Source: Monocercomonoides exilis PA203 | Lineage: Eukaryota > Protista > Preaxostyla | NCBI GenBank assembly: GCA_001643675.2 | Contig: LSRY02000020.1 | Span: 62,001 to 126,000, forward strand | Direction of reading: 5' to 3' | Length of the DNA: 64,000 nucleotides | Shown: positions 11,991-59,082 of the stretch, in pieces | Layout: each line of letters begins with the position of its first letter | Position numbering within the stretch: the first letter of the stretch is position 1 | Program-made: the position numbers and the translations under genes | Notes under the pieces: generated by a model | Databases searched by the model: none | The model's input: the letters and a program-made list of their open reading frames with translations, nothing else | Told to the model about the DNA's origin: nothing

Positions 11991-13224
11991 TTCCAGCACA
12001 TTTTCGAAATACCATTTCCATGCACCCATATCATCAGAAAATATTTCGTTGAGTTCACAGATAAGTGTTTTTGTGAACATTCTTTGTGACAAAGACATTT
12101 GATGAATGTTTGATCAAACCCATAAATACTTGAAAATGACAATTTTTCAATAAAAAAAATAATATTTTTGACCACTTTCCGCATGTTTTTAAAAGATAAT
12201 AATTGCATAATAATTAATAAAAAATCATTATAAACAGAAATAAACGTATTCCAGGCGTTCCCATATCTTCAGGTCTTGCCAAACTTTTTTCGGATTGTTG
12301 ATTTTTCAAAAGGTTTATTTCTTTGGAGTGGAATTATCCATTCAAAAGAAAAAAATTTTAATAATTGTTTGAAATAACATTGATTAAGATTATACTCATT
12401 TTAAATTTGTCTTCGAATAAGAAATGACTTTTCGATGTTTATTTTTCAATATTCGAAATGATTTTTCAAACACAAATATTTGAACGAAAAAATATGGATT
12501 CAAAAATCATCACCCATTGGCTTTTCTTTTTGGAAAGTTGCAAATATTTAATTATGGGAATAATAAAAAAACTTCATATCTTTATCGAATTACTGTTCCC
12601 ACTCATAAATGAAAACAAGAATGAATATTAAGCATTGTCAATAAATGACCATGATGCTTTTGAATGCATATTTCTTGATTTTCTGATCAAAAAATAAATC
12701 CATTTCAAATACGCATTTATTTGTTTTTTTAACAGATAAGAATAAATAAACAAATATAAAACAACACTTTTAAAAAAATTAATCAAAAAAAAATTAGAAA
12801 TAGCGTTTTTGCTTTTTCATTCATCTCTCTGGTTTTTATGAAATTTAGTTATTTTAAATGTTCTTCCATCTTTGGAACAGTGAATCTCAGAAAAATAGTG
12901 GTCACATGTCATTTCATCTGCAATAACGGTTAAAGTGGAATCAATCTACACCTATTTCGATCACGCCCATTATATTTAAATTTATGTTATTTCCTATCTT
13001 AAACAAACTCTGAATTAAATAATTTCTAGTGTTATATGACTAATTGTTTTCGCGTTTTATTTGCAAGGGTTAAGAAAATGAAAAAAAGTTAGGGTTTTCC
13101 AAGAAAATCCATTTCTTTTTTTGAAAATTAACGATAAGAAAGAGATGATTTTAAATAGGCCTTTGCGACAACCAATTTTTTCGTTTTCCATGTCGGTCGA
13201 TTTTGCTTTCAGTTGTCGAGGATT

Positions 13225-13261
<37 letters not shown>

Positions 13262-14359
13262 AATATGGCTTTCAATTTCTTGAAACCTAATAGAACCTAG
13301 GCCTTTGCGACAACTCATTTTTTAAATTATTGTGTCGGTCGAATAAGTCTTTCTTTGTCGATTTGTTAATTTTACAATTATTGTCCAAAAAGTGTGCAAT
13401 CATAGTTTTTATTGCAAACTTTCTCAATTTAATGAATTTCTCACAATTAATAGGTGTTAATTTTTAATACATTTAAAAGTCGAATAAAAAATAATCGAAA
13501 AAATTTATAATTCATTTGATCGAAATACATTCGTTGGAGATCCGATTCGTTGGCTTTGTTTTAATGCGCTATATTAGAAAATGAGTTCAATTTCCTTGTA
13601 AGAAAAGTTTGATGCAAAATTTTGCACTCTAAACTTTGTATATTTTCTTTTTTATTGTTAATTAATTAATGAAACGATATAGTTTAAACATATGCATTTA
13701 TTTCATTATCTCTTGTTTCACAATTTTGATGTTATTGCTTGATATGCAATATCTGCATGTGAGACATAAATAAAAAAGCAATCAATAAAGAGATTCAAAA
13801 ATATTTATTTTTTAAAAAACACATTGTTCAGAACAGGTTTGAAGCAGTTTTTCTTTTATTTAAGATAATATTTATTAGATGACGTTATTTTGTTGTTTTT
13901 ATCCTTTTTTAACAACAAACAGAATCAGATATTATATGAAAACGTTAATTTCAACAATAGAATCGGTTATAAAAACAACAGTCAATTGGAACCTTGTAAT
14001 TGAACCTTTGATATTCAGAAGTTCAAATTAAAAATAACTTGTCAAATATTTGTTTTTTAAGTTCGTTTTTAACTTTGTTTATTTTTGATGCTTTTTGTTT
14101 CTAAGAAAAATAATATTCATAAAAAGAAATGACTTAATAAGTCCTTTTTCCGATTGGTTGATTTTCTTCTTCTTCTTCTTTTTCTTTCTTTTTCTATTAA
14201 CTTTTCTTTTTTTTCCTTTTTCTTTCTTTCTTTCTTTCTTTTTTTGCAAAAATCACAAACTTGTAAACAAATGTTGAAGTTGTGAAATATAAAAATGGTA
14301 ATAAACATTGATTGCATCTTTTATTTAATTGTTTTGAACTCGTTTCTAAATCGGATAGA

Positions 14360-15829
14360 GGAATTCAGAAAAACAGGAAGAGATTGTGAATGACAACGTC
14401 AGAAAAGATCCAAAAGCATTTGAGATGGTGACGATGGAGATGTCGTCAGAGGAGCAATGGAGGAGAGCAGAGAGGGAGGCAGAGAAGAAGAATGAAGAGA
14501 GGATAAAGAAGAGAATATATGGGTGATTTTTTTTGAATTCATATTTTCTCGGTTAAATATTTCTATTTAAAAAGATCCATTGAATATCAACAAACGAACA
14601 ATGAGAAATGAAAAGACTTATTAAAGACATCTTCATCTTTATTTGAGTTGAAACATGTGTTAATGAAAACAGTTGAAATGTATTTAGCATTTGAATATAA
14701 AATCTCTTAAAGTGATAATCAATCTTTGAAAAAACAACACCCCGAAAAAAATTATGATTTCAAAAATAATCACCCATATGATACGAAAAGCTTGGGGCAT
14801 TCGGAATCATCAGAACATCTTCTCTCTGAGAGCGGTTCCACTGAATACATATTGGGGAGAGACTCTGACAAGATTCCTGAATGGGCATTGGAGAAAGTTG
14901 AGGAAGAAGAGACGAGAAAGCGAACGCCATCGCCATCCATTTCATCCACTTCAACTTCTTCAACAACTGATTCAGATTCCACTTTTGTTCGGGGAGAGGA
15001 TCTGTGCGCCACCACTTCATCCATGTCGAATCTGGTGGATGCTATGGCCTGCTCGTCTCCTCACGAAAAGCTGATTGTGGATCTGAGGGATTCATTGTTC
15101 ATGCTTCTGCATGGAAGGAATGAGAAGAAAGAAATGGCAATTGGCGCTCTGAAGGAGAGAGAACAAACAGCTGCACAGATCCTGTTCTGGGTGGCTAATC
15201 TCGCTCTTCACTCATTTGATGAAATGGAAAACAAGCTTCAGTCATTGTCCAGTCTGAGTCCTCACATTGTTTTGTTTTCTGAGCACATGGTGATCTGCAT
15301 TGTGATGCATTCTGATTTCCTTTCATCTGATGATTCTGATTCATCATCCATCTCATCATCAACAGTTGTGACTTCTGCAAGCGATGATGATGATGACAGC
15401 GACTCCCTTCCATCATCAGCCTTTGAGGATGAGGATGATTACAAGAAAGAGTGCATGAGGTGGAAGGCCCCAGAGCTGCAGATGAGCAAGAAGATGGGGG
15501 CAACAAAGGAGTCGGTGGCATTCTCGATAGGGATGATGCTGTGGGAGTGCTTGACGCTGGAGATCCCGTTTGGGGAGTATGAGGCAGAGGTGGCGGGGCA
15601 GAAGATTGTGAACGGAGAAATACCAGATCTAAGAAAAGTGCTGGAATCTTCATACGTAGAGGTGCTGCATCACGCTTATTCTCCTCAGAAAGGCAACCGC
15701 CCAACGCTAATTGCAATGAAAAGGGAGTTGATTCAACGTTTTCCAACAGGTGCTGCGATGATAACGATGTCAGATGCAATTTGTGAAAGTGATGGAAGAA
15801 GAATGAAAGAGAAAGAAGTCAATTTTTAA
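14360..15829 (+). pseudogene. 5'-truncated pseudokinase-family gene fragment carried inside the hAT element
   Basis: Exon ~14360-14521 (EIVNDNVRKDPKAFEMVTMEMS...) then an intron, then ORF 14726-15829 homologous to 5383-6270; no signal peptide or TM segment upstream. Confidence 0.75.
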
Positions 15830-16451
15830 AGAGGAGTGGAAAACTATTCGAGAGGTTTATATTTCATATTTTAGGCAGCAAAGAGTTTTGTGCGGAGGAG
15901 ATGAATAAATTGAGAAGAAGTTGAAACTTAAAAAAAAGAGGCAAAATAAATGAAAAACACATATCATCTTTTAAGAATCTTATGGAGTGTAAACGAGAAC
16001 TTTTTTGTGTTGATTTTGTGATATTTCAGTTTTGAAATGCAGTTTCAAATGCGTTTATCTATTAATCAAAATAAAGATATATTTTTTCAGGATTGAAATG
16101 ACATTTAAATCACAACCAACTTCTTGTTTTTCAACGAATGGTTGTTGCCATCGATGAAAATCAAATAAAAAGTTACATTTAAAAGAGAATGAAGAAATAA
16201 CTTGTTTCATTCGTTTTTTCTTATTAACGATTTGAGGAATATTGCAGCTTATTTCCAAGAGTCAATATTTAATAATTTTTTATCGTTGTTTCAATTGAAG
16301 TTCAGAATCTTATCTTTTAGATAATTTAGGCATAAATAATTATTGGTGTTTTAAAAACTGAAATATCAAATAAAAAAATAAAGAAAAAAAAAGAAAAACA
16401 AATTAATCTATTGTTTTGAATTTATGTTATAAAATGAAACTATGAAAACTT

Positions 16452-19400
16452 TCAAAGAAGAAGCAAAGAATTCAGCATTTCCAATGAAAGTGAGTGTCTA
16501 TTATCACCTACGATAAGACGAAGCCTTGAAAATAGTCGCTCGCAAGAAGTCTCGCTGCAGGGGAAAGTTATTAAAGCGAAACAAATGTTTGAAAAAATTG
16601 AGTGAAAATGATCAAGTTTACTAATTTCAGAGAATAAAACAAAACAATTATCAAGCACAGCAGACTGATGACAGTCAAAAATAAAAGAAGAATACAAAGC
16701 TTCCACATGTTTTCTAACTTCTTTGTTTTGGTTTGAAAGAACATTTGACGCATATTGATGAAAACCACTTTTCATTCTAATAAACCAATCCATCTTTATT
16801 GTTTCGATAATGCTTCTAATTGTCATTTGTTTCTGATCCATATCTTTCAGTTTACCAAATTCAATAAATTCACTTGAGCCAATAAATCGAAGATCATCGT
16901 CATTTTCAGAATTGTCTGAGGATTCGTCATCATCATTGCTTTCAGCAACTTCGCTTCTAACTTTGCACCTTATTTCATTGATTTCTTTTTCACTTTCTTT
17001 TCTTGTGATATATGTATTGGTCTCTTTCTGCAAAGATAAAGACGAATCAAAAGTATCAGGAAATTCGTCTTCTTCAGAATCTCTTTCAGCTTGTAATAAA
17101 CCAAAAATATCCAGATCTTCCTCATCAATTTCTTCTTGATCCATTGAAGAAAATTCATTAATTTTTAACGGAGAATTTTCTGATATTATTTTGAGTAACT
17201 GAATAATGTGCATGTCATCTGGATTCTCGCTATCCATCTTTGGAACAGTGATTGTTATATGAGAAGATGAATTGATTTCCTTTTGAGACGATGAAGTTTG
17301 CTTTTTATTTTCGCAAGGTTCAGGATTCAACGAACGAAGAGTGGAATAAAATGCGTTGATTGTGAAGGGGTTCGATTCATACGTTATTGAAGATGGAACA
17401 TCAAACATTATTTTTCGAAAAGATAAATCATTTCCAATGAACAAATCTTTCACAGTATTTTGCTTTGAAGTTTCATTTGGAAATTCATTTCGCTTATCTA
17501 TTCTTATCATCTTGCAGATTTTTCTATGATCAGTTTCCATTTCATTTTCAGAAGAAATCGAGTTCAAACAAAAGGGAGAAGAAGTTGATTGTTTTGATGG
17601 AATGGAAGGAAAGGAAGGCAGTTCAAAAGGTTGAACAGATGATACCTCATTGCGAGGTGAAAGTTGAGATAAAGTTATGCAAGTAGAAGGAGAAGTTAGA
17701 TGGGAATTTCGCGGTTTCCAGATTTGTTTGATTATTTGATGAGTGGAAGGAGAGGAAGGAGAAGTGGAAGAAGAGGGAGAGGTAGAGGAAGAGGAAGAAG
17801 ATGATGAAGAAGAAATTGCATTGGAGTTAAATGACGAAAATGAGGGTGAAATTGACTTGAATAAGTGTTCGCGACCCTGGGGTTTTGATGAATCTGCTTT
17901 GTTCGTTATATTCATATCAGTATGTGGTAATGCATTATTTGAATCAACGTGTGTGGAAATTGAACATGTAGTTTCCACTGAAAAAGCCTGTTTATATCCT
18001 TCTTTTAACCTGCACAATTCTGAGCAGAATGTTTCGGAAAATGATCCTGCTTGATAAAGATTTCTTCCTATTGGTGTCAAAGAGAAGGCTAAAGAAATAA
18101 TATTCCCTCGATTTCCTGCCAAGAAATAATTAAATAAAAGAATTATAATTTGACATAAACCAGATCGCCAGTTTTCATCGGAAAATTCTGCCAGCTCCTG
18201 CATCCAAATGAACCGTGCAAATGCCTTTAATATCTCTGGGAAAATATCACCTAACTTAATTTCTTCCTTTTCAAAGAACAACTGAAGTTCTTTGAGAGGA
18301 AATAAAAGAAGTTCATTTTTGATCACATCATTAACAAAAATTAATTCCTTCAACTCAGAAAAACAATCATAATAATAATGTTTTCCAATGAAACAACAAA
18401 TGTCATAAAGACAAAGCCATCTGGTTTCCACAAATGTGGGGTATTTCGGAATTGTCGGAATTCTTCGAGAAAGGACTTTCACTTGTTTGGAATATGTAAT
18501 TATTGTATCTCTCAATTTTTGAAAAAATTCATTTTTTCTGTAAAAATGACTCACCACTAAATTTAACAGATGATTGCAACAATACACAAATACTGGAGTC
18601 GTTCCTGCGCATATCGATAAAGACGTTTTTGTAATATTTTCTTCACTCAAACTTTCAATTGCTTTCCGTTGAGGAAGCAAACCATCAGTGCAAAAGCATC
18701 GCACTTCTCCGTGAAGATCTCTGATTTCCGTTAAAATTTGTGTGATGAGCTTCGAATAGTCTGATGAAGTGTAGTAAGCTTCATTTATCCTCCAAAAAAA
18801 TGGTTTTGCAAATTCCTTCAATGGGACAACTGTAATAACTGTGTACTTTTTGCTTGCAATAATTCCTCCATCAATCATTACTCCAACCATAGAATTATAT
18901 ATTATTTTTTTCCTTTCAGCGATTATTTTGTTCACTTCATCATGAATAATTGAAGAGAGTTTTCTGTGATTCAAACGTGGAAAAATGGACTCTGTTGATA
19001 AAGAAGGATTTTGTTGTGAGATCTGTATCAATGTTGAAATAAAAGTATTAAATTCCGATGAGTAAGCAGACAAGAAAGCTAAATTACAATGACTGATTAG
19101 CTTCAAAAAAAGACTAATTAAAGAATCATATTGAAAATGATAAGGTGCGATTTTCTATGTTGCAAAATTTGTTTGATAGCTTGAAGAACATGGTGATTTT
19201 AAATATTGGACAATACAAGAATTATTCAACAGAGAACATTGATGATTGCATATCCTTTCGCTTCCTTTCCTTCCACATATCCCGCAATCAACTCCTTGCT
19301 TGCTGTTAGGACATAAATAGTATTTGTGTCCATTTTTTTTTAACGAGCCATCATTTTTGACTGGAGTGTACGCTATCCAAAGTCTGTTATTGTTCACTTC

Positions 19401-19598
19401 AAAGTGAACTTTTCCAATTTCTTCACCTGTATTGTTGGGGTGTTTGAAATCTTTTTTTTTAATGAAGAAAAAGATATGATGTAACTTTTGATCGTAATAA
19501 ATTATATTCACACATTTTCCAAAATTAGTGGTTTTCGAATATTCTAACTTTACAAATGAACAATTGCTTCTTTTCAACTCTTCTATTTTTTTTCTCAA
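16452..19598 (-). CDS. hAT transposase interrupted by one in-frame TAG (19155-19157)
   Basis: MIDGG, FCTDG, CCNHLLNL (CxxH), ETRW and C-terminal CSETSCERLFSRL..NRHSL dimerisation motif; ORFs 19155-19598 and 16452-19106 share one frame, joined by 16 sense codons. Confidence 0.85.
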
Positions 19599-19769
19599 TG
19601 CATCGCTCTTCGAAAAAAAAAATCAAAACAATTCATTTTTGTTTAAATTAAACTATGTTTTCAAACCACTTCTTTTGTCTTAATACAATTTTGTAATTCA
19701 AGAGGTAAAAACTTAATAAAATCATAGTCATTTGAAACTTCCGTGATATCAGCTTTCTGAAATAAAAGT

Positions 19770-19850
19770 TGATCTATTCGACAGATTGATCAGATTGACA
19801 GACTGATCTATATGACAGGCTGATCAATTCGACCGACTGATCTTTGTCGA
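19770..19850. repeat. 17-bp subterminal tandem repeat (TGATCwwwwNGACNGry x4 plus a partial copy)
   Basis: Units tgatctattcgacagat / tgatcagattgacagac / tgatctatatgacaggc / tgatcaattcgaccgac / tgatctttgtcga. Confidence 0.85.
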
Positions 19851-20158
19851 AAAAAATAAAAAATGTTTATTAATAAATTGTAAACAAACAATTTATTATT
19901 TGAAAATACATGTGAATTATATCTATCTTTTTTTGTTTGAATAGAAAATAAAAAAAAAATTCGAAAAAAATAAAAATAAACATTCGAATATATTTTTTTT
20001 TGTCTGTCGACTTGTCGAATGCTTTCAAAAAATGTCGGTCTGTCGCAATGGCCTAATTTTAAATGTTTGAATACAGTTATTTTTCTAAAAAAAATAAGAA
20101 TATATTAAGTATTTATCATTTAATATGTTGGAAAAATGATTATGCATGTCAATTTTAG

Positions 20159-24123: not shown

Positions 24124-25224
24124 GAGAAGATGGCGGAGATGACAAGGGGAAGTCATAACTTTGAATACGATTGACATGTTAACAACATGATCACAAAAGA
24201 ATTTTTCATAATGCAATAGATTTTGTGGTATTATTTTTTGGAGAATGTTCAATGGAATCATTTGTGAGCAAAACCGAATTTGGAATAATTCATATCATGT
24301 TTCATAGTTCGCTGTTTCTTTTTCTTAATTTTTTTTCCCTGTTTCATTCATGTTATAATTATTTTTTAAACATTATCATCATTTTTTGTTTCACTTAAAT
24401 GTGTTTTTGTGTTTGTTTTTCTTTTCTTGCCGTTTTTTGGCAACTTTTGACATTCGCAGTGATTTTCTGTGGATTAGCAATGCTTTTTTTTTTTTATTAT
24501 TTTTTAAATCAAAATTATTATTCATTTTTCGTTATTATTATAAAATTTCACCATCTTCGTCATTTTTTTGATTGGATTGCATTTGTGTTGATTGCTGTTT
24601 CATCTCATCATCTGCATTTTTTCGTGTTTTAGCTGTTATGCCAGTTTACTACTTTTGAAATAGTGTCTCAATTTGTTGAAGGACAATGATTGTCTCTCTT
24701 TGCTGATTGCACAAATCTCCAATTTATATTAGTTTATCGAACATCATCTGAATATGTTTCACTCATTGCTTTCCGTTTGTTGAATTAGCTTTTTATTTAT
24801 TAGCTTTTAAGTTGTTGACGCAAAACAATTTCTTCCATCAATGCAAATACAAAAGATGTTTCAAGAACTTCACTTGTTTTTTGAATTCATTTTAAACTTT
24901 CATGAAATCTCAAACAAACTGCATTTGCTTAAATTATGCTATTTTTTGAAGTGAAACAATCGCAAGGATAAAAACTCACCAATTCATAAGGAAAATTGAA
25001 TGGCATCAAAATTAATATAACAGAAGTGGTTTAGACTTTCATAAACTGTCAATCGGATCAAATTCATCAAAAAGGCGCTGCTTTTCAATATCGTTTGCAA
25101 CATCGAAAATGAAAAAAAGAATTCATTTTGGCAATATCTATTTGACAAAGCAACAACACGTCACCTCAAAGGCATAGCTGAAATAGGTTATTTTTCGCAA
25201 AAAAGTAAAAACTTAGCCAAAGAT

Positions 25225-31468: not shown

Positions 31469-34400
31469 TCAAGGCACTTTTATCATCAGCGCAAACTCGT
31501 CGATGACCTTCTGGAGGATAGTTCTGTCCTGAAGCGACGCATTGTCCGAGTTCAGATACTGCACATACGACCTCGGCAGCACTGGATTGCCCAGGATGTT
31601 CTCCTTCTCCATCTCCACATCAGTCATCTTCCCGCCCAGCAGCACCGCCATTTCTCTGTCTGTCTTCTTCACATGCTCGCTTATCCACATCGCAATCAGT
31701 TGCAAAACACCATTCACATGCTGCGACGTCAGTGCCTTCCCCTTCCGCACTGTCGCCACCATCTGCAGCGATGCCACAAGCATCTTCTTGATCAGCTGCG
31801 CATGCACCTCAAAGTGCGGGATGCGGTGGCTCGACGGAATGCGATGCTTGATCATCAGCGTCTCTTCGTCGTAGAACATTGCAAAAGAGGCAATCAGGAA
31901 TCTCCTCATCACTTTGAAGTATGGATGCTCCAGCTGGTTCGTTCCATCAGGAAGAAGACGATAGAGCGCCTTTGTGCGCTTCACTTTCTTCTTCACCAGC
32001 ACTCCTCTCTCGTCATACACCTCCTCCTCTTCATGGGCATTCTTGTCGATCAGCTCACCCTTCTCGTTTGCTCTGCCTGCTCTGATGTCGTCTTCAAGCA
32101 AGATGTCCTTCCACTCTGCCAGTTGCGCCACTTCCTGCTTCACATCCATCGTCTGATCAATCGCGCCACACATTTCAGCTGCTAGCAGTGCAACAATGTG
32201 ATGCTCATAGTCAAGTCGATGCATATCCACAAGACACCCATCGTCCCATGCAGCTGTTCCCATCGCGGATTTCTCCTCTTCTCCATCGTGGATTGGATTG
32301 AGGTCGGTTATTTTGTTTGACACCAGTGCCACGTGGAAGAGGTCAGAGCGAGAAGGAATGAAGCACGCGAAATAGCCAATAGACGATGCCACAATCGATG
32401 CAACGAAGAGGAGAATGAGAAGTGTCTCGTACAACTTCGTCACTCTGTCCTGCTCCAAGACAAGAAGACGATTAAACTCCAGCAAACCATCACTCAGATC
32501 AAATATCATTGCAGAGTTCATAAACTGCACAGCCGAAGACTCCATCGTAATCAGCGAAGGATCCATGTCCTTCCCCAGCGTCTGGGCGCGTGTCACAAAC
32601 ATCGTAATCAGCGGATCGAGCCCAGCAAAGGAGCCATACAGATCATAAATGTTGTTCTTTCCAGTGCACTGCGATTTGTCTGCCTTGAAGCAGCTCGTGT
32701 TCTCAAACATCAGTTTGTTCAGTGCAGAGCCTGGGTTGACTGTGCGGATTGCATCAAGCGCCTCTATTTCATCATCGCCTGTAATAATCAAGTTGCCGTC
32801 GTTATCTTTGTTGCCCATGGTTACTTTCTGGTTCAGCTGGATAAGAAATTCTATTCCATCGAGCAGCAGATTCTGTTGTGTGGTGAGTGACGTGTTCAGA
32901 TAGCTCATGTTGGTCACAATAGGATTGGTGGAACCTGTAATCTCAAAGATCGTTGGCGGGTCTGCAGCAAACGGGGCAGCAAGGTTAATGGAGAAGAAGG
33001 TCAGAAAGTTCATGATGAAGGCACGGTACATCGAAAGGAACACATTTCCCATCATTTCAGTCGCCTTCTGGTTGGCAAACACACAAATCACAAAGAATGC
33101 AACAGGAAGGAGTGTAATCAGCACAAAGCCAAATCCAATGCGGAAGTAGAATGTCATCCGAACAGGCGAGCCCATCGTGTTTATCTGCTCATGTAGCTCT
33201 TCCAGCTTTTCCTGTTCTTTCTCATTCAGCCTTTGCTCTTCGTCTGCCTGCTTGGAATCGCCATTCGCAGCAGCTTGTGGTGCAAGTGGCGTCATCATCG
33301 GAGAAGGTGTCTTTTGTGGTGCCTGAGAGCCAGGTTGTGGGGAAGCTGAAGGAGATATGAATCCGTTGTGGCCATACGATGTCTGCGATCCATTTGTCTG
33401 TGGAGGAGAGACAGTGCCACTGGGAGACACTCCAAACGGGGACTGTTGGTAGAAGAAGCCGTCAAACTGCGACGAAGGCGTGGCGAAGGAGGACGAGTTC
33501 TGCGAGGCCATCTGCTGCGCCTGCTGGGCAAACGAGGGCGAGGTGGTTGCCTGCGGCGGGGGAGTCCAGCCGAGCTGGTGAGCAAGCTGGGCAAACGCAC
33601 TCAGCTGCATCTGGCTGGCCAGAAAGTCCGAGGCAAAGGGGCTGCCTGGATTGTGCATGTATGGCTGCGGGGGATAGGCCTGTGTGGGTATCATCTGGTA
33701 GTGATTCTGGAAGTTGAGCTGAGGGTGGAAGAGGTTCGGAACAGGAGTGTTGCGGTCGTGGCTCTGATCGTATTCAATGCGCGAGTTCCAGGAAGGTGTG
33801 TCTGTGTAGATGCTGTCTGCTGTCTGGAAGCGATGAGAGGGCGGATAATCTGAATGGGGCTGCGCAAATGACTGTGTGCGGTGCTGCTGTGGTGGATGAG
33901 GCGAGTGTCTGCTCTGCTTGCGAGATGAGAGGGAAGTGCGGGACTCGTGTGGTGAGAGATGCCATGTGGACTGCGACTGCACTTTGTTCAGAGGATGTTT
34001 AGCGTTGCTCTGTTGTTGCTGCTGTTGCTCGCTCGTCTGCAGCTCGTTGAAGTGCTTCCGGCTGAAGTGATGGTGAAGCTCCTTATCAGACTCACTTGGC
34101 TGCGTCTCTGCTCTGTGGATCTGCTTCTGTCTGTGTGACTTCGTTCGATGAATTTGCTGAGGTGGTGGCTGTGGAGCCTGCTCTTCTTGTTGGGCGGGTG
34201 GATGTGGGCTCTCTCTGTGTAGAGTGGATGGACTGCCTTCATCGAACATCTCGTGTTCTTTGCTTTGCACAGCCTGTTGAGAGAGATGGGTGGGTGTAGA
34301 TGGCGAGGGAGAGAGACCAGTGCTGCGTCCATATCCATCGGAGGAGGCGTCAGTCTGCAGAAGAGGTGATGCAGGCTCAGCAAATGAACTGATCGGCGAT

Positions 34401-37400
34401 TCTTGTTTGAGAGAGGCCTCGCTAATGTGTGGTGTTGAATGGGAAATGCGTTCGACGTCAGACTCCAACTCGTCAGAGATCACCAAAATTGCCTCTTTTG
34501 ACTGGTTGTGTTGTGGCATAAGAGACGATGAGTCAGTCTGGTTATCAAGAGAACCACCTGAAGTCAAAGGAACAGGAGAAAGAGGTGAAGAAGAGGAAGA
34601 GGAAGAGGATGATGAAGATGATGAGGAAGAAGAATAGGAAGAAGAAGAGGAAGATAAAGGAGAAGGTGATGAAACAGAAGCTGTAATAGGAGACGATGAA
34701 GACAACAAATGTGACGATCCTTGTAATTCAGGTGTGTTTGGCGTGTCAGTCACTTGCTGTTGAACTGCCCCCACATTTGATGCCTCTGCTTCCTTATTAG
34801 CATTCTGAATGGACGCAGCAACAGATTGAATGCAAGGCGCAACAGTCGCACTAATGATGGTCTCGCTCAGCATCGTGTCATTTGGAGATATGGTTGATGA
34901 TGTCACAGCTGTTGTGGCTGAGCCAATTGATTGCTGACTCTGCGACGACCTGATCTGGATGATTTCATGTATCGTGGCTGACTGGTTGGGCAGGATGGTT
35001 CCTTTCAGCTCTTCATGGTCTTCTTCTTCCTCATCCTCTTCTTTCATCTCAATCCGCTCTGACTTCTTCAGCCCACTCGTCCCAACATTCGCACTCTCTT
35101 TTGCTGCCACCGCTGCTGCAGCTGTTCTGTCACCTGCATCTTTTCTTTTCCTCATCGAATTCTTGTGGCTCAGAATGAGCTTGCTGTCTGACTGGGCTGC
35201 TTTTATCTGCTCCTGAGCTGCCACAAGCGCTTCCATCCTCTTCCTCTCCTCGTTCCCATCTGCTTCTTCCACTCCATTCGCATACGGCGGCTCTGCAATA
35301 TTCAGTTGTGCTACATCTTTCGATCTCAGCTGTTCTGTGTGTCTGCGGTTGACAGATGCGTTTGGATCATATTCTTCTCCCAAATTGTGTTCATACTGCT
35401 CAATATCTTCAGTCATCACTTGCTCCTCTTTTGTCTGCGGAGGCTTCACCAGCTGCGGCAGCTTGGTTTTCGACTGCGCTTCGCTCTTCGAAATGCGGAA
35501 GGAATGTCTGCTACGCGGCGTCCGCTTTGGTTTCTGCAGACGTGGCAATTGCTTTCTTGATGTCTGATGTGACTGGCTCTGCAGCTTCGGAGAGAGTTGA
35601 AGCTGATACGTCGACTGCGAATGTGCCTGAGAGCGTGTGGTGAGGTTGATCGACTGCAGCACAGCTTGTGACTGAGAACTCTGCATCGACGATACACGCT
35701 TCAGCTTGCTGGACGACACATTGCCAATCGTCTTGTACCGATTGTGCGCCACTTGCAGCGCTTTTTTACTGCCAAAGCCGTCTTCACCGGTTGGCGGGTT
35801 GTCAAACAGCATCTCGTTTTCTGAGTCCATCGACATATCTGAACTCGAACGCTGCGTCGTTCGCTCGTATTCTGCTCTTGATTGTGAATGGACCATTCTT
35901 CTTTCGCTCTTCCCATCTCTGTCGTCCACTCCTCCTCCTCCTCCTCCTCCCCCAACTCCTCCATATGTCTTCACATCCAGCGAGTCCAGCACAGCCACTG
36001 CAGTGGGCGACTCAATGCTCGCTCGCGAGGCTGTTGTGGACGACTGGAACATTGCTGCGTCTTCAGGCTCCATCTGATTCTCTGCATCGTCCAGCCGCTT
36101 CTTCAGCTGCAGGATCTGCTCCTTCGGCACGCGGCACAAGTCAAACATGACAGCCTTCCTCTCCTTCTTCAGCTTGGCGATGGTAACAATGTACTGAAGC
36201 AGTTGGATGATGATTGTGATGACCAGCAGCGTCATACCAATAGACACCGACAGAATTGTCATTTGATTGCCGCTCTTCAGCGTGAGGGACGAGTAGAACA
36301 AGGTTGCTGCCTTCAGCTTCTCAGACACAGTGACTGGGATGTTGGCAGAGATGTATGCCATGCTGTTCTGAGAGGAAGAGGAGGCATATGTGAAGGAGCG
36401 TGCCATGTCGTGAAGTGTGTTCGAGATGCTGGAGACTAAGTCAATCATCGACACATTCGTCTGCCAGAATGCCTTGTATGTTGCATCCGGTCGCATAAAG
36501 CTTATTGTCTGCTTCATTGTATCCAGCTCCCACTGCTCAAACTGTACTGTCTGCGACGACTGTGCGTAGATATCATCGAGCAGCTTGCTGACTGTCCTCT
36601 GCTCTTCCGACAGCAGAGCATCGATGTTTCTGTGTGTCGGCATCCACCCCAGAAGAGACTGGTCAACAGCGCCGCTTTCGATCGTGGCGATGTATCTGGA
36701 GTAGAGCATGATGGTGGCGAAGGACAGCATCATCTGCGTGCCCTTGTTGATAATGTTGACTGTTGCCTTCGACTCGCTGAATTGCATCGTCGTCAGCACA
36801 AACCCGATAATGAGCGCAACCATAAACATCGTCATGCACAGTGCTAAAAGAGGGTAGAAAAGGGGAAGAAGCTTCTTCTGCTTCATCGAAATGTTCAATG
36901 TATCCACTGCACTTCCACCTGTGCCACTTGCACTGCCTGGCCCAGAACCAATCGAGTTGCGCATGGCCTTCGCCCGCTTCGCGCGTTTCTTCTTCTCAAG
37001 CTGCAACTTCTTCTTCTGCATCTGCTTGACCACATCCACGTTGTCTGTCAGTGCAACAGACGGATCAATATTTCTCCCTCTGAACGATGTTGATGATCTG
37101 CTCATGACACTCATCGTCTCAGGCACAGGATGTCTCACCGGAGCAAGCGAAGCAGTCGATGCGGTGTTCGCAATAGGCATCGTTCCAAGTGCAGTTGTCG
37201 AGGGGAAGTTCGAACTCAGGCCCAACAAACTGGGTGTTGTGTTGTAGTTGTCAGAGAAGCCCTTCTCTCTCGTCAGCCCTGTCACTCCTCCTCCCATTCC
37301 ACCCCATCCCCATCCGCCGACTCCTTCCAGCTGCACCATGCTCTCCTGCCCCATCCCCGTCTGCCCAAATGTGAATGTATCATCCAGTGTAGTTGATTGT

Positions 37401-40400
37401 GTGTATGTCAGCATCGATGCCTCGTCTTCAATAGCATTCGCCTGCATAAACAGAAGTGTTGCTGTCTCATCGTCTCTAAAGATGTCTCTAAGTAATGTTC
37501 CATACGCCCTCAGCACCTGCGTCGACTGCGGATTGGAGATGAGCAGCGAGTTGAACTCGGCGTTGGCTTCTTCCTCGTTCTGGATGGCCTTCTCAATCGT
37601 CATCGCTATTTTAGGCAGATCTAATCGCTCTTTTGACAAGAGCAGATACGCCTGCTGAAGATAAGCACGTGCCAAGTCAACACCTTTTGAGGCTCTGTCG
37701 AAACGCTGTTTGAACTGAAGAGAGAGAGAAGCATTGGGTGAGGATGAGGCTGATGGAAGATAGAGAATAAATAATAAATCAAAACATATGAGAAGGATAT
37801 AATACATATGAATATTGTTATTATTTATAAAGAAAAATATCATCTCATTAACCAACAAACATAACAGCAGTGTATAATTAAATTCTCCAATAAAAATGAA
37901 CACTCTCGTCAACCACACACACCTCCTCTTGTTCTCTGTGCCTTCCTCTCGACGTCTCTCAGCAGGCAGAACATGACAAATCTCTCGTGGATGGACGGAA
38001 TGCACTGCCGCAGAAACTGAATGGCCTGCATAAACTTCATCGTGCTCTCTGTGAAACTCATGTGGAAGATGCAGCAGCTCAGCCAGAGCGGCGACGAGTT
38101 GCGGAATTTCTTCACGCCATAGCTCAAAATGTTGTCGGCGAGGTCGATGCATTCAGGGCTCTTGGCAAAAGAAGAGTGAGAAAGAAAGCGGATGGCGTGG
38201 ATGACAGCTGTGGGCGAGGAGTACTTGGGGAGGACGCGAGGTGAGGAGGGAGATAACTGTGAGGCTAAGGTAGCAATAGAAGAGGAGGATGAGGAGGAAG
38301 CAGATGAAGAGGAAGAGGAAGAAGAAGATGAGGAAGAATTACTCGCGCCAGGTTGATTTTGCGGCAGCGGGAAGAAGAGCAGTGGAGTTGGTGGGTTAGC
38401 AATTGTTGGGGTTGTGGTGAATCTGGCAGAAGGGTGTTCTCCGAGAGGAGAATGATGGATGGGCTGGTGGATGGAGCTGACTGTTGGGAGCAGCTGTCTC
38501 GAAGGGGAAGCAGACATCGCCAGACGGGAGGAAGGGAAAGATGTGGATGAGACAGGGCGCAGCTGGTCAGCAGAGAAGCAGTTTGGGACAGGAGTTGAGC
38601 TCTGCATTGAGTGCATGCCAATCGGAGAGAGCACACTCGGCGCAGGAGAGACAACAGGTGAGGAAGATCCCACAGCCATGCTGTTATTATTGTTACTGTT
38701 GTTATTGTAATAAGAACTGTTGTTGTTGCTGTTGTGATTGCGAGCGCTCTGAATGGGTGAGCCAGACGTCCTTCTCGCCAGCAGCGGCACATTCGATCCC
38801 CACGCCTCGCTCGGTGCCTTCATCCCAATTGCACCTTGTTTCTGTCCGTCGCTGTTACCCTCTGCCTTCCTCTGTGCCTCACTCACAGCAGCTGAGTGTG
38901 TTGAGTGTGTGGAGCGTGTGGAGCGGGGCGTCCTCACCAGCTGAAGGGGCATGCTGTCTGCAGGCGCCAGAGGTACTGGGGTGTGTGCGGGGGAGATGCG
39001 CTGTGCTGAGTCCAAAGGCGAATGGGCAGGCGAAACATCATTCGGAGTGCTTAAGGGAAGCACATTTGTCAGCACTTCGTCTTCGTCTATCGCTGCAACC
39101 TCTGCATTCTCATCTCCTTCATCAGCTTCTCTGCTTCTGTCTGACTTCAGCTTTTGTTCTTCTTCTCCTTCTCCTCCTTCGTGTCCTTCATGAATATCAT
39201 GCACTTCATGCACTTCATTACCATCACTTTCTTCTTCATGTTGATGTTCTTCTGGTTCTTCATGCTCTTCCTCCTCCATCTCATCTTCCCCAACTCCCTC
39301 TGCCATTGCCTCATCGTCCTCTTCTCCCATCGTCTCCTGCCCATTCCCTTGTTCCTTTGCCAACTCATCTTCACTTCCCTTCATCATCCTCGTTGATGAC
39401 GTGGCTGAAGATGAATGTGATGTTGGCAGAGGTCCCTGGAAACCATGTTCCTGAAAGTTGTCTTGTGACAGCTTCAGAGGAGAGCGGTGGGAAGGAAGCG
39501 CAAGATTGATCTTGTCTAGCTGATCGGGCTGATTGGACTGTACTGTCACTTCATTCGCTGACTGTATCGAAAGCGAAGATGAAGAGGAGGAAGTCGAAGT
39601 GACTGGAGAAGAAGAAGAAGAAGATGTGTTTGTGGAGGCAGAGCCAGCGGTAGTTGTCTGAAAAGCAGAGAGAGAAGCAGTCTGTTGCATTTGAGGCGAC
39701 GCCATGACCGCAGGGCTGACGACAGGCAGAGCGAACTGAGTGGCCTTCAGATTGGGTGTGGTGGGGGTGGCTGACTGGGCAGTGGGGGTGGGGGAGATGG
39801 TGATTTGGATGGGGGGCATTATAGGGGAAGGGGGGAAGGGCTCGGTGGGTGTGAGAGACTGGACGAGGGGGGAGTTCTGGGAAGAAGGAGAGCAGGGGCT
39901 GTGGAAGTGGGGGGAGGTTCCGCCTTGTTGCATCGAAGGAAAGAGAGAGTTGGAGAAGGAAGAGAAGGCAAGAGAGGAGGAGGAGCACGACTGGCTCATC
40001 TGCTGTGACTGCATTTGCTGTTGCTGTTGTATCTGAAGGTGTCTGGCTGATTTGAATGGAGTGGAAGACGCTCGGATGTCTACAAGATGTGAAAGGGGAC
40101 GGAATTGGCGAGCGGATTTCGATGGGACTGAAAATATAAATTATCATTAAAAAAAATCAATGAAACCATTATTTTATTTCAAAATAAAGCTTTTCGTTAT
40201 TTCTTTAAAAACAAGAATAATAAATATTCCTGATTATTTTTCTTTCATTCTCTTTTCCCCCAGCCACACACCCATCATCTGCTCAATGTTTCCCTCGTCT
40301 CTTCTTCCCGACAAAATCAACATCTCTTTCTCTTTCATCTGCTGCTGCCCAGGTGCAAGTGGAATTGTTTCCTCTCCCTTCTTCATTGCCCACTCTGAAT

Positions 40401-41653: not shown

Positions 41654-41746
41654 AACACAAAGCGGTTGTTCGAAGTTTCCTTAAAAAATGTAAGGGATTA
41701 TAAAAATAAGTTATTTTATTCTGATCAATAAAAAATATTCCTGAAA

Positions 41747-50700: not shown

Positions 50701-50859
50701 AAAAGAAGATAAAAATATTAATTTGTATTGAGAACATTCAAATATAAAAGAAATTTGTTTTCCATTTAAATCAAACTGTTATATTTATCAGTAATAGTAA
50801 TTTTTATCAAAATTTTTTTCGCAATAACTTTGTTAATTTCTGGTGGAAAACCAAAAAAT

Positions 50860-50933
50860 TGTCACGATCCGGGATCGAACCGGAGACCTCATGCGTGTGA
50901 AGCATATGTGATAACCAACTACACCATCGTGAC
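50860..50933 (-). tRNA. tRNA-Val(CAC)
   Basis: Reverse complement GTCACGATGGTGTAGTTGGTTATCACATATGCTT-CAC-ACGCATGAGGTCTCCGGTTCGATCCCGGATCGTGACA; acceptor stem, D arm, anticodon arm and TTCGA T-loop all pair. Confidence 0.95.
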
Positions 50934-50940
50934 ATGTCTA

Positions 50941-52595: not shown

Positions 52596-52910
52596 TATCA
52601 AAAAAGAATTTTTTGTTTAAATATAAATAATATAATTTGTCGCATCCATTGATATTATTGAAGAAAATTTTTAACAAAATTGAAAAACTTTAAAGCAGAG
52701 TGGAAAATTCGAACGACTTCAAGTTCTCTTAAACTTGACAATGATCAATAAAAGTCAAATGATATTATTGTTGTTGAAATATAAATGATATTAAATAATG
52801 TTCATTATTTTTTATCTATTTTCCAATTTATTTTTGTGCTTCTTTTTGAATAATTGAAAATTTTTTATGTGAAAAGAATTCTTTAAGTTAATTTATTTCA
52901 TATATGTGAC

Positions 52911-55900
52911 TAAACCTGTGTGACGTAATGACTACTGACGTGAATATTTACGTTTCTGACGGACTTAACGAAAATATTCGCGTCAGTAATTAATTGTGGT
53001 TATTTCTGAAGTAATTAATCAAAAAGGAATTATTAACTTTATTCATTTCATTTTCATATAACTTTTTTGCATAAAAAATTCACTCTCACATTGTTTTATT
53101 TTTTTTTTTTTGATCAAAATTCAAGATTTTTATTTCAATGGGATACTGACGAAAAGGCAAAAAAGGAATTTCAGATCGTCATTGACGGTTATGCCCGTCA
53201 GGTCAAGTCAGTGTCTCCATGAGTTGATCAAAAAAGCAAATTTTAACTCTTTGGTAAAAGAGTTACATTTATCTTTGCCTCCAATAAAATGGTTTGAGAT
53301 ATAAAGTTTTTTTTGAGCTTTTATCAAGATAATATTGCAGAAATCAAAATATATTGTCTATTGTGAAGAACAAATGAAGAAAATGTCACTGCGAGTTAAT
53401 TCAACAAAACATCCAGCTCGAAGTTTCATTTGTGAATGGTTTGTTCAAATGAAGTGATTTTCACGAACTGGTTTTCAGAAGTTAATAAAGAACATCACCT
53501 TTCGCATTTCATGTCTTCAGAAAATTCACCCTTCTTTGTTTGTTTTCGTCTCTTCGTTACATGAACAAATGAATTGAAGATTCAGCATCGATATACTTAT
53601 CTTCATAGAAATATTGCTTTCTAATTTTTCATTCAACCATCTCTTCTGAAAATGCAAATTAGCATTTATCCATTTCATCAACTTACGTGAAACATCAATC
53701 ATCTTCAACTTTGCTTCTTGAAAAATATTCATTATTTTCTCTGAAAATCCAACTGAACTCCCGACTAATGAATTTTTCACTGAAAACATTATGACAGAAG
53801 CAATATCTCTGAATGATACAAATACTCATTCATATATTGTTGAAAATAAAAATAGTGAAATCGAGAAATTTAAGATTTTCTGAACATTTTTTTGAAGCAT
53901 TCTTTTCGAATAAAGATATGAAAAATGTTGATTCGTGTCTTCTCCGAACTCTTATCCATTCTCTAAATACAGAATCCAGCTGGAGGTGAACAAACACATG
54001 AATCCATCGAATATTTGAAGATTAAAGATACTCAAAGATTGCCTAGACAGTTAATTTATTGTAGAGAATAATTTTTTTTTAAATTCAACCCATCCACGTA
54101 ATAATTATAAAACTTTGATCCATGTCATAAATCGTATCGAAAGAAAATATTATTAGTAATGATTGAAGTCTGTATATTTTTGTTGTTATTCAGATAAAAT
54201 GAAATGAATGAAGAATTAACCTCAAAAATGAACAAATAATCTATATTTTTCGTTTTGTTTCTTTTGCCAACAACGAAATTGTTGAGGTGGAGGAGTTAAG
54301 AGTGAGTGTAGCTGTGGGGGAGGTGAGGTGGAAGATGCTTTGGCTGTTGAGGGTGAGACTGGTGATTGCTGTGTGGTTGAGGGCGAGGGAGCCAGCAGTG
54401 ATGAAGAAGAGGGGGGTTGTGATTGATGATGAAGATGGGGTTGTTCCGGTGATGGTGGTTGTGTTGAGGTTGAGGGAAGGGGAGTTTTGGGAGAGGTGGA
54501 AGAAGATGGGGGTGATGTGATTTGTGGAGTTGTGGGCGATGGCGAGGGCAGAGACTGTGAGGGAGCCCTGGGTCTGTTGGAAGAGGGCAGAAGTGGCAGA
54601 TGGATCTGGTGAAGAAGATGCAGATGAAAATGATGAATATGATGAATATGATGATGATGACTGTGATGACTGTGATGACTGTGAATGTGAGTTTGGTGGT
54701 TGGGGAATGCCACTGGAGGCGATGGTGGTGGCATCTGTGCCATTTCCATTGATTTTTGTGTCAACCTCGCTAAAAGTGAGTGTTTGAATGGGAACAAATA
54801 TTGAGGTGAGGAGGGTGAGGGAAGCGTCTTGGAGGAGGGAAATGAAGCTATTGAGGGCATATTCGATGGTGGCACATGGGGTCTGTTGGGGCCTGCCACA
54901 TGCATCGATATCTGATCTTCCATTTGCAACAATTTTGTTTTGAGCGATGAGGGGGAGCCAGCCGTTGAACACATCACTATCAGCTGTGTAGTTGTTCCAG
55001 ACTCTTTTAGATGGAGTTGTTGATCCGCAATTCTCGAATGGGGATTGAGTGATGCTGTTTCCATTGAAGAACACATCATTCCCCCTGCCGTTTTTTGCTG
55101 TATTTCCATCAAAGAAACAAAAAGTGATAAATTTTGTTCCACTCATCCAGGAATAAGTTGCTGTGCAACACAGCGCAGCTCCTCCGTATGTGGAAGAAGC
55201 AGTCAGTTTATTATTTATAAATTGGCAATCATCAATCAAAAATTGATTTGGCTTCACTTGAGGAGGCCAATTGAATGTGAGAGCACCAGCAGAATCTCCA
55301 CCAGAATTTGAAATACACTTGCATTCGAAAAACAAAAATTGACCGTTTGAAGATAAGGTGCTGATAGCAAAAAACCAACCAGTTCCGCACCAGTTTGTGA
55401 TTGAACAACTTTCCACTCTGCTTTCTGAGAATGTCCAAACAGAATTTGATTGTGGATTCCATATTGCTGCTGCTCCTCCATGATATCCAGAACAATTTGT
55501 GAAATTGGATTGCATTATATTTAACTTTAACAAAAAAAAAAAAAAAAAAAAACAACGCTCCCCCATCCCAACTGCTTGAACAATAATTGAATGAGCACAA
55601 TGTGATGGCAAGATAAGAATTTACACTATCCACAGAAAGCGCTCCTCCTCGATTTCATCCGCTAGAAATATTTTCCCATTCGCACCACTCGAAGCGATGA
55701 CTGTTAACATCAAAGGAATGTAGTCTTCCAAGTTTCACTCTTTGAGTTTCGGAGCCGACATGTACAACAGCAGCATTTAACGAAGAGCATGCATTTTATA
55801 TGAAGTGGTTTGTTCTGAATAGAAGGATGAATCGATTAAGGCGTGAGGGATCTCTGACATAGAAGCAATTCAATAAAAAATCGATATTAAAATGGATTAA

Positions 55901-56120
55901 TGGGATATGAAAATTTGATTCAGAAATTATTCCTTTCTAAAATTATTCTCGTTAAATCTCTAATAGAAAATATAAAAGAGCGCTTGAAAAGAATAAGTTT
56001 TCTTATTTATTAATTATGAAAAACAAAAAAAAACAAAAAAAAAAAAAAAAAAACCACTGACGTGGAAATTCGTTCCTGACGGACGTGAAGACAAAACTCA
56101 CCTCACGTCACACAGGTTTA
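52911..56120. mobile_element. Non-autonomous hAT-type element with host-gene cargo (Pack-type)
   Basis: Perfect 16-bp TIR TAAACCTGTGTGACGT / ACGTCACACAGGTTTA; TSD TATGTGAC at 52903-52910 and 56121-56128; subterminal TGACG motifs; no transposase. Confidence 0.9.
54241..55860 (-). pseudogene. Beta-helix (pectin-lyase/Pmp-like GGA repeat) surface-protein fragment
   Basis: Repeated FxNC...GGA motifs, FDGNTAKNGRGNDV, CG...PCATIEYA; stops in the 5' part, a retained intron near 55510-55556, truncated 3' end. Confidence 0.7.
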
Positions 56121-56237
56121 TATGTGACTATTTTTGAAGTCATCTTTTTTCATGCAAAATTTTCTGTTCGAAAATTTCACTTGAATAATAACAAAAGAAC
56201 TCTGAAAAGTGAAAATACTTATTTTTGATATCTTCAT

Positions 56238-56316
56238 TATACATCTGTGACCTGACAAATAACTTGAAGCCTCGTCTGTCAAAAAAAAAAAAAAAAAAAG
56301 AAAAAAGAAAAAGAAA

Positions 56317-56347
<31 letters not shown>

Positions 56348-57110
56348 TATTTTGTATTAATATTAAATAAACAATTGCAAAAACTTCCAAAGACTTTTCA
56401 AAGCAAATTGGAAAAGATATGTTGATAGGATCTGTAATATCTTGTCGTTTTTTCTCTTTTGTCAGTGACCGTCAGTGACCGTCAGTGACTGTCCACGACA
56501 AATTGTGACAAAATTATTCCTCAATTGACATTTCGTGTCAAATAAAATAAATATTGGGAACTTGATCACATAAGAAAAAAATTCAATTTTTTCAAAATAA
56601 TAAGAATTATTACATGAAGATTTTCATATTAATAACAGATATCGCACAAAATACCGGACAAGGTCCATATCTCAATAACCTCAAGAAGAAAAATTCTGTT
56701 CATTTTCCTCAAAATATATCTCATCAATGCAAACTCACGTGCCATACCAGACTTTTAAAATCGCCTCATTCGTACTCAGAGAAAATTATTTTTTATATTT
56801 CGGAGTAATAGGATTTCAAGTTTCTCCGAAATATAAAAAATAATTTTCTCTGAGTACGAATGAGGCGATTTTAAAAGTCTGGTATGGCACGTGAGTTTGC
56901 ATTGATGAGATATATTTTGAGGAAAATGAACAGAATTTTTCTTCTTGAGGTTATTGAGATATGGACCTTGTCCGGTATTTTGTGCGATATCTGTGTTGTT
57001 GTATAAAAATTGTAAAATCGTTGCGCATTACCCATTTTGACAAGTCCTAAATATCTTGTCAGTCATTTTGTCATTTTTTCAATTTTCTCTTGTCATGTCA
57101 CAGAGGTGTA
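56238..57110. mobile_element. Short non-autonomous hAT-type element containing a long palindrome
   Basis: TIR TATACATCTGTGACCTGACAA vs reverse complement TACACCTCTGTGACATGACAA (18/21); TSD ATCTTCAT at 56230-56237 and 57111-57118; subterminal (GTCAGTGACY)x3 at 56461-56490. Confidence 0.85.
56635..56994. repeat. Perfect inverted repeat: 171-bp arms, 18-bp spacer
   Basis: Arm 56635-56805 is the reverse complement of 56824-56994; spacer TAATAGGATTTCAAGTTT. Confidence 0.95.
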
Positions 57111-59082
57111 ATCTTCATCTTTATTTCAGCTCACACTTTTGTTTTTAAAATGGATATGATGAAACTTATCATTAAAATACAAAATCTGGATTAAATTACA
57201 AACAACCTTTGAATAATTAACACTGCGAAAAAATTTATGATTTCAAAAATAATCAGACATATTTCCTTTAAAAGCACACTGTTTTTAAATTATTTGGAAT
57301 CTTCTTTTATAATTTCGTGTTTTTGCAAATTTAATGAAGAATGATAAAAATAGAATTCACTTTTTTCATTTCACTTTTTGAATTTCAAAAACATGGTGGC
57401 AAATATGGACTTTCAAGCTTTTTTTGAACAAAGAAAGAAAATTTTGTTTCACTTATAACATTATTAAACTTTCTCAGATTTCAAAAAAATTATGATTTTA
57501 ATAACTGTAAACAAACATCATTGATGTGATCACAAAATGTTTTGTAATCTCACATGTATTTTATACAATAAACCCATTTTTTAAACATATTTCCAGATCA
57601 CAAAAAGCGTATCAGAAGTGCATAATTTTTTCTTAGAAAATGCTTGCGGCTAAATATTTTGTCACATTTGTGTGATGATTTTTGAATAATTGTTTTCTCT
57701 TACAAAAATTTCTGTTTTATTATTCACTTTATATATCGAAAAACATACGCTGAAAAGTTGCAACTCTTTTTTAAAAATATATTTTTCTTGAGCATAATTT
57801 CGAACATCTTCATTTGAAACAATTGTAATGTTTTTTTCTTTTGTATGAATAAACTGTCTCCAAAGATATCAAGTCTGTGAAGAATCAACACTCCAACAAA
57901 AGTTACGATTTCTAAAATAATCACCTCGTCTCGTGAAATTTAATAAGTTCTAATGAAATTTTGATGAAAATGAATATTTTCATTTTCACCGGAAATTTTT
58001 ACGAAAGGATATTTCAAAAAATTATATTTTGGAAATTTGGTACTTTTTTTTTTTTTTCACTTTTTAATATTCAATTTGATAAGTTTGAAAATTGGTTTTC
58101 ATAATTTTTGTAATTAATTATGAAAAAAAACATTTTTAATGAAAAATATAAACAAATTTGAATGTTTGAAATCATAACATTCAGAAATGTCGAATCCCTA
58201 AAAATATAACATTGTTGAAATAAGTCGTATTTGGTTTTTTCATTTCGTTATGCATTATTTTTTTTTTAATATTTTTTATAAGTTACACCAATAATTATTC
58301 AAAGTCGAAATTTTTCATTCGAAGTCGAAAAAGTTTCAATCAAAATAGAAATTTTAATAATCAAGAACATATGTTTCCCAATGAAAAATCAATTGAAGAA
58401 AAATATTGTTCTTTTGTTTTTGTGAATATTATTGGCAATGTTTGTGTTGTTGTTTTCTACTAATTTTGAAGAATTCGAACAAAAATAAAGTCTGAAACAA
58501 ACTCCAAACAAAATTCAAGACATTTGTTTTTTTCAATAAGAAATAAGTTTTTTGTAATGAAAAAACACGAAATGAGAAAGCCAATACTGTATTCATCATT
58601 CTTCAAAAAATAAGTGAAAAAACAATATTTTTCTTTCGCAAATTTTCTGTGAAAAAGAATGCTTTCAATTGAAAATAGATAAAAATATGTTAGAATTCAT
58701 ATCATGTTTTGAATTTGCAATTGTTCAAAAAGAATAACAAAAATATTACAGAAAAGAGATAAAAATTCATTAAAATAGCAAACATCATTGATATTTCAAT
58801 AATTTAATTGTTTTTTGACTTTTATTGATTTTTGTCAACTTTTTGAAAATTTGAAGTTTTTCGAATTTTCGATTTTGCTTGAAAGTTTTTCGAATTTGAA
58901 TTATTCTTGGTGTGTTATTCTGAAATTAAGATTAAACCGGAAATACATTAACAATATGAACTTAATGTGTTTCATATGTATTGTAGGAAAAATGAAAAAA
59001 AAATTACTTTTTTGTTAAAAATTTTTTACACAAAAAAATGTAATTATGAGAAAAGATCATAAGTGAACATTAAATATTTCTA

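Follow-up and report, generated by a model that had tools for sequence, protein, structure and literature searches.

Three hAT elements, two of them carrying pieces of a giant gene family, in a 64-kb window of the Monocercomonoides exilis PA203 genome

Gene-fragment capture by hAT transposable elements, previously described in plants and fungi, is here extended to a metamonad, through the analysis of a stretch of 64,000 nucleotides of Monocercomonoides exilis PA203 (GenBank assembly GCA_001643675.2, contig LSRY02000020.1, positions 62,001 to 126,000 of the forward strand; the whole stretch is called the window), which holds three hAT elements designated A, B and C. Pack-hAT (Pack-TYPE) elements are known from maize and rice (PMC8903248). 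A hAT element of Pyrenophora tritici-repentis transduplicates a histone H3-like gene as a complete open reading frame (ORF), which is amplified and expressed (PMC3538342), and hAT-derived MITEs (miniature inverted-repeat transposable elements) are represented by, e.g., the BniHAT families of Brassica (PMC7385995). According to the genome paper of M. exilis PA203, DNA transposons account for 4.5% and unclassified repeats for 35%, the latter overlapping the 'protein tyrosine kinases', which are the largest gene family (PMC8767320). The hAT superfamily is mentioned in neither of the two M. exilis genome papers (PMC8767320, PMC6759080), and an earlier description of Pack-type hATs in the Monocercomonoides lineage was not found in the literature consulted.

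The window very probably holds three members of a lineage-specific, Ac-like, recently active hAT population that carries transduplicated pieces of one giant gene family. Like the Pack-hAT elements of maize and rice, element B is devoid of a transposase, has hAT ends and 8-bp duplications, carries host-gene fragments and occurs in multi-copy clusters; unlike them, it resides in a metamonad, every cargo identified derives from a single hyper-abundant family, and a copy holds one uninterrupted piece instead of a mosaic of several genes. As in the Pyrenophora element, captured host sequence is found beside the transposase gene of a probably autonomous hAT, and shorter derivatives have no transposase, whereas the captured pieces are here truncated and decaying parts of a very large gene rather than a complete H3-like ORF. 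Shared with Ac/Ds of maize and with Hermes of the housefly (structures 2BW3, 4D1Q and 6DWW), both of the Ac clade, are the 8-bp duplications of the form nTnnnnAn, short TA(G/A) ends, family-specific subterminal repeats, CxxH and RW motifs, a C-terminal dimerisation domain, and internally deleted derivatives, which by analogy would be mobilised in trans; the proteins differ in their larger size (~900-1,000 residues), in long low-complexity inserts and in a zinc-finger-like N-terminus that Pfam does not recognise as zf-BED. The base form of element C resembles the BniHAT MITEs in being ~470 bp long and non-coding, with hAT-type ends, 8-bp duplications and dozens of copies; the copy in the window differs from them in holding a nested, TA-flanked palindromic MITE of another family.

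An earlier note on this DNA had proposed three elements with related inverted ends, each with its own perfect 8-bp target-site duplication, and all three were recovered in place:

13156-20055 (no strand assigned): element A, a 6.9-kb hAT element with a transposase gene of subfamily S4 and A-type ends
13148-13155 (left) and 20056-20063 (right): target-site duplication of A, ATTTTAAA, 8 bp, perfect
52911-56120 (no strand assigned): element B, 3.2 kb, Pack-like, without transposase, with perfect 16-bp inverted ends
52903-52910 and 56121-56128: duplication of B, TATGTGAC, 8 bp, perfect
56238-57110 (no strand assigned): element C, a member of a hAT MITE family with a base form of ~470 bp
56230-56237 and 57111-57118: duplication of C, ATCTTCAT, 8 bp, perfect

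The 15-bp ends of A (TAGGCCTTTGCGACA and TAGGCCATTGCGACA) differ at one base, and those of C are imperfect (TATACATCTGTGACC and TACACCTCTGTGACA). The subterminal motifs, noted earlier as GAC-rich, are not one shared motif: A has GTCGA/GTCGGTC, B has TGACG, and C has GTCAGTGAC/TGTCA. Such differences would be expected from transposases that each recognise their own ends.

The M. exilis PA203 assembly (82.3 Mb in 101 contigs) was scanned for these ends, with the same pattern reversed as the control. The end consensus TANNCCTNTGYGAC, with five matches in the window against 0.02 expected, yielded 545 matches genome-wide (273+272) against 70 (34+36) for the reversed control, an approximately eight-fold excess. 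The A-type end, with up to one mismatch, was found 194 times (2 in the control), the exact B-type end 39 times (0 in the control) and the C-type end, with up to one mismatch, 70 times (4 in the control). Perfect duplications specific to the pair flanked eight of the nine convergent B-type pairs, the ninth having a single mismatch, and 14 of the 20 A-type pairs fetched; for three further copies of C, one duplication was perfect and two agreed at 7/8 positions. The comparison that had been proposed as a check, of consensus end pairs with 8-bp duplications against chance, thus came out in favour of genuine elements, most sampled pairs having perfect duplications. Among 25 perfect duplications, position 2 was T in 18 (p=9e-5) and position 7 was A in 19 (p=6e-6), both against the composition of the window. 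The consensus nTnnnnAn is the target preference of Ac-type hAT elements; by this target bias, the duplications fit the Ac clade rather than Buster.

The transposase alignment and the profile derived from it comprise four M. exilis transposases and 30 relatives (34 homologues). Conserved are two aspartates, the CxxH and TRW motifs and a C-terminal S-E..C-E-R..FS block (columns D115, D177, C212, H215, R265, W266, E783 and R788), in keeping with the RNase H-like core of hAT transposases, which has CxxH and RW motifs and a catalytic E in its C-terminal block. An N-terminal C..C..H..C pattern, for which Pfam gives zero zf-BED matches, is conserved too. When the profile was compared with solved structures, the top four matches were Hermes transposase (E=1e-13 to 4e-12), and the alignment covered the CxxH, TRW and C-terminal SER-FS blocks; with the single sequence of the transposase of copy L015, the best match among solved structures was unrelated (E=0.12), so that Hermes was found by the profile only. 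The dimerisation domain Dimer_Tnp_hAT (PF05699) was matched by 11 of the 34 homologues; it scored 22.0 and 23.0 bits in L015 and L021, the Pfam cut-off being 21.4. Together with the 8-bp duplications and their nTnnnnAn bias, the Hermes profile match and this domain bear out the assignment to hAT made in the earlier note. The 9-kb relatives L015, L021 and L026 have open transposase frames of ~900 codons, which give 815-864 aa when counted from the first start codon. An exhaustive search of 1.8 billion representative proteins returned only 184 relatives; the best one outside M. exilis had ~30% identity, and the closest proteins (P0001-P0008) ~24-30%, P0001, P0002, P0003, P0006 and P0008 all being from ENA metagenome contigs of 3.5-5.9 kb. 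In M. exilis the transposase genes are annotated as uncharacterised proteins, as is the relative MONOS_10729 ('uncharacterized protein').

A genome search with the L015 transposase located at least 55 loci. They fall into several subfamilies with 33-100% identity, and open frames of 900-1,016 codons are present at many of the loci. Five further subfamilies were read as DNA, and each has a consensus-type inward end ~0.6-0.9 kb upstream of the transposase gene; short upstream stretches were read for S3, S6 and the C21 and C12:650182 loci. The ends assigned to the subfamilies are:

S1, S2 and S4: A-type end TAGGCCTTTGCGACA (for S2 by coordinates, ~0.8 kb upstream of the transposase genes)
S5: end TAAGCCTTTGTGACT, 21 exact genome copies; pairs surround four transposase genes
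S3: end TAGGCCTCTGCGACA, 0.7-0.9 kb upstream, inward-facing
S6: end TAAGCCTGGGTGACT, one mismatch to the consensus, 0.7-0.9 kb upstream, inward-facing
C21 locus: end TAATCCTCTGCGACT, 0.7-0.9 kb upstream, inward-facing
C12:650182 locus: end TAAGCCTATGTGACA, 0.7-0.9 kb upstream, inward-facing

In all seven transposase subfamilies examined the ends conform to the consensus, with a single mismatch in one of them, in agreement with the diversified hAT system that had been proposed. At 21 of 26 positions, the subterminal TGACAAAT among them, the end at C12:650182 is identical to the C-family end, which makes the transposase of this locus the likeliest candidate partner of the C MITEs. Pfam searches of nine other element ORFs returned nothing apart from DDE_1 in L024; this pogo-type transposase fragment (3723-4448 of L024, - strand), within an A-type hAT element, is a nested insertion of another superfamily.

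The cargo of element B is:

54288-55786 (- strand): N-terminal part of a giant family gene, contiguous over 1.5 kb

This piece has 82.5% nucleotide identity over 1.5 kb to L031, a giant gene described below, and a tblastn comparison of B with two transposases gave no match. The B backbone occurs in approximately seven copies genome-wide, all of them B-like, and five of the seven carry the 1.5-kb cargo (B in the window, L006, L007 and the copies on C91 and C41). Collinearity of B with L006 and L007 extends over the full length of the elements, both cargo junctions included, which points to one capture. L001, L002 and L005 are shorter deletion derivatives: the ends as well as portions of the B cargo are retained in them, as is typical after internal deletion. 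L006 and L007, both with cargo, share 99.4% identity. They sit in unrelated flanking sequence on separate contigs, each with a duplication of its own, so that a recent transposition of the cargo-bearing element follows. The proposal that pieces of a host gene family are carried and moved by these elements is upheld. Another young pair is L020/L023 (97.7% identical).

Two further pairs of copies were observed. L003 (G000:C17:74570-78050) and L004 (79859-83340) are 3.48-kb B-type elements, 99.9% identical, 1.8 kb apart and inverted, and with their different duplications look like a very recent local hop. L008 (G000:C62:205835-209167) and L009 (222447-225757), 16.6 kb apart, have the same duplication and identical 200-bp flanks, which indicates segmental duplication, not transposition.

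The beta-helix character attributed to the B cargo rests on language-model neighbours only (DUF1565, Chlam_PMP and Beta_helix), the structure prediction from a five-sequence alignment being too poor to add to it (mean predicted local distance difference test score, pLDDT, of 33). Among the assembled contigs of sequencing runs, RNA contigs on B covered the cargo part only, with 4-9 mismatches per ~90 nt, which point to paralogues; none lay on the B backbone or on C.

Element A was described in the earlier note as a transposase carrier; the hAT transposase gene is present, but its frame is broken by a premature TAG. The features within A are:

16452-19154 (- strand): transposase core with the catalytic region and the C-terminal dimerisation motif, recognised by profile, Pfam and alignment
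19155-19157 (- strand): in-frame TAG that separates the core from the zinc-finger-like N-terminal region (19158-19620)
14359-15829 (+ strand): cargo, the kinase-like C-terminal tail of giant-family genes, recognised by Pfam, blastx and blastn
14520-14776 (no strand assigned): nested MITE of 257 bp in the cargo, with TGGGTGATT ends and TA on both sides
13298-13312 (+ strand): internal second left end, 142 bp inside the functional left end

The TAG aligns with a lysine in MONOS_10729, the protein of which runs through this position. With its transposase frame split, A is probably non-autonomous now, and to judge from its sequence it probably depends on intact relatives. The 8 bp preceding the inner left end differ from the right duplication. 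This end is preceded by a run of ~44 T, and the two left ends are in direct orientation; the pair may have been left behind by an older insertion or by repair that was aborted.

The cargo of A corresponds to residues ~2518-2908 of L031 (a 2944-residue partial copy), and Pfam recognises in it PK_Tyr_Ser-Thr, C-lobe only. A kinase tail occupies the same relative position in A and in its S4 relative L043; it also occurs in three collinear 9-kb S1 elements and, in the opposite orientation, in L018. The S1 elements are 87-92% identical on the cargo side versus 93-97% on the transposase side. Further copies of the TGGGTGATT-ended MITE of ~260 bp lie at 11113-11377, 57111-57262 and 57666-57925; this TA-flanked family is probably of Tc1/mariner/pogo type. 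An intron at 14520-14776 was considered and ruled out, given the inverted ends, the TA flanks, the other copies and the contiguity of L018 and a host gene at this point. A 295-residue ORF at 5383-6270 (- strand) represents another kinase-like tail, the DNA of which is 76% identical to the A cargo; it has no recognised element ends around it and may be a truncated family member.

The two cargoes had been taken for members of two families, a beta-helix ectodomain and a pseudokinase; both proved instead to come from the same giant genes, that of B from the N-terminal part and that of A from the C-terminal tail. Protein searches with the 367-residue ORF of A and the 456-residue ORF of B each gave more than 1,400 first-look candidates, and the scored family matches were 70-90% identical and located mostly within open frames of ~2,000-4,200 codons. 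L031, an open frame of 3,063 codons of which 2,944 were read, holds both cargo types, the B-type piece corresponding to its residues ~248-749. Only the protein kinase C-lobe at the very end of the giant-family protein is seen by Pfam.

Element C, presented in the earlier note as a hairpin carrier, turned out to be a hAT MITE of ~470 bp into which an independent palindromic MITE is nested:

56636-56993 (no strand assigned): palindromic (foldback) MITE in C, with arms at 56635-56808 and 56821-56994 that are 99% complementary

This composition follows from C copies without the hairpin and from solo hairpin copies elsewhere. The copies L032-L034 are ~470 bp long, have no hairpin and possess 8-bp duplications of their own, and many convergent pairs of consensus ends ~470-490 bp apart were found in the genome; the base form of C, short, non-coding and multi-copy with ends and duplication, is a MITE. 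The hairpin unit gave 638 genome candidates on both strands (80-91% identity), its solo copies having the ends CAGTTTGTGC and TA flanks. The nesting junction in the C copy of the window is not clean, ~45 bp of the base element having been replaced. Copies of the foldback MITE family (~360-415 bp, e.g., L035, L036 and L037) differ by 10-20%, each with its own near-perfect palindrome. Directly to the right of C lies the TGGGTGATT-ended MITE copy at 57111-57262, which implies that C was inserted into or beside it. An inverted repeat (52675-52882 / 58692-58898, 74-78% identity, ~5.8-6.0 kb apart) brackets the region of B and C.

Under the reading of an Ac-like hAT population, transposases would cut at ends fitting TANNCCTNTGYGAC, and reinsertion at nTnnnnAn targets would generate the 8-bp duplications, each family being recognised through its own subterminal motifs. 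Host pieces would probably have been picked up during excision-gap repair or by joint mobilisation of neighbouring ends, and would then travel as non-functional passengers. Several points weigh against this account. The capture mechanism was inferred rather than observed, and the kinase-tail tree, a polytomy with one well-supported fork only in which A groups with host genes and not with L043, does not give the number of capture events. The ends, 14-16 bp long and starting with TAG, TAA or TAT, have C at the fifth base, whereas the classical hAT end, YARNG, has G; the transposase of A itself reaches 14.7 bits in Pfam, below the cut-off, and contains a stop codon. No partner transposase was found for B, none of the listed transposase loci lying near a B-type end. 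In the run contigs, where paralogue cross-mapping dominates, empty sites or excision footprints were not seen. A clean joint was absent at either empty site; in the single contig skipping C, the sequences left and right of it are separated by 34 other letters.

The missing fifth-base G and the near-threshold Pfam matches might suggest that the elements belong to P, MULE or Zisupton, superfamilies that also have 8-bp duplications, or that the end pairs came together by chance. Given the nTnnnnAn preference, the pair-specific duplications, the consensus excess over the control and the alignment of the Hermes profile with the hAT-specific CxxH, TRW and C-terminal blocks, this is scarcely credible and effectively refuted. 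The larger role suggested in the earlier note, with hAT elements as the driver behind the spread of the giant surface/receptor-like family and the shuffling of its domains, draws on pieces of the family in at least 11 of the 32 sampled elements and in the 502-residue ORF of L017 (also family-derived), on differences in the stretch covered and in orientation among A, the S1 elements, L018 and the B lineage, and on the recent movement of cargo-bearing copies. However, the pieces measure 0.3-1.9 kb, far below the ~2,000-4,200-codon frames in which the best-scoring members are mostly found; they are truncated and without starts, and in the S1 elements they diverge faster than the transposase side. 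Nor did the family appear over-represented by base pairs: in the 164 kb of element DNA sampled its share is 6.4%, versus a rough ~14.5% or more in the genome, both lower bounds, the share in elements having been measured with a single representative that misses diverged pieces such as L017. A chimeric gene did not turn up, no search having been aimed at such genes. The suggestion was not borne out, and a driving role of this kind is very unlikely.

Two other explanations concern the cargo itself. The occurrence of the tail at the same relative position and in the same orientation in S1 and S4, the proteins of which are only ~30-54% identical, would be explained if the kinase-like tail were a retained module that benefits the element through 3' processing signals, repair homology or protection from silencing; if so, homology to ~1,500 host genes could shield the elements from homology-based silencing or supply repair templates. 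Such a module appears distinctly improbable, since the lower identity of the S1 cargo side, the shortened or split tail frames and the disruption of the A piece by a MITE speak against it, the S5 region read has no ORF of the kinase-tail kind, and the abundance of the family makes repeated chance capture plausible. Gene conversion in gap repair that repeatedly overwrote the cargo with the sequence of host paralogues, in place of one capture per lineage, would account for the A tail being nearer to four host genes (78-84% identical) than to the L043 tail (71%) and for its position in a polytomy with host genes. The tree, with its single fork, is nevertheless compatible with one origin, and a faster neutral decay of element copies gives the same distances, so that such overwriting is considered rather unlikely.

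Elsewhere in the window, a GC-rich block at 31469-40014 (- strand; ~50% GC vs ~30% around it) contains ORFs of 2,227 and 701 residues, the larger of which has a TmcB-type TPR match.

The understanding of how such elements work is unchanged by these results. For M. exilis, the gains are an end consensus for this hAT clade, at least seven transposase subfamilies and evidence of recent movement. A part of the repeat fraction becomes classifiable, and the gene count of the giant family can be cleaned of transposon-borne fragments.

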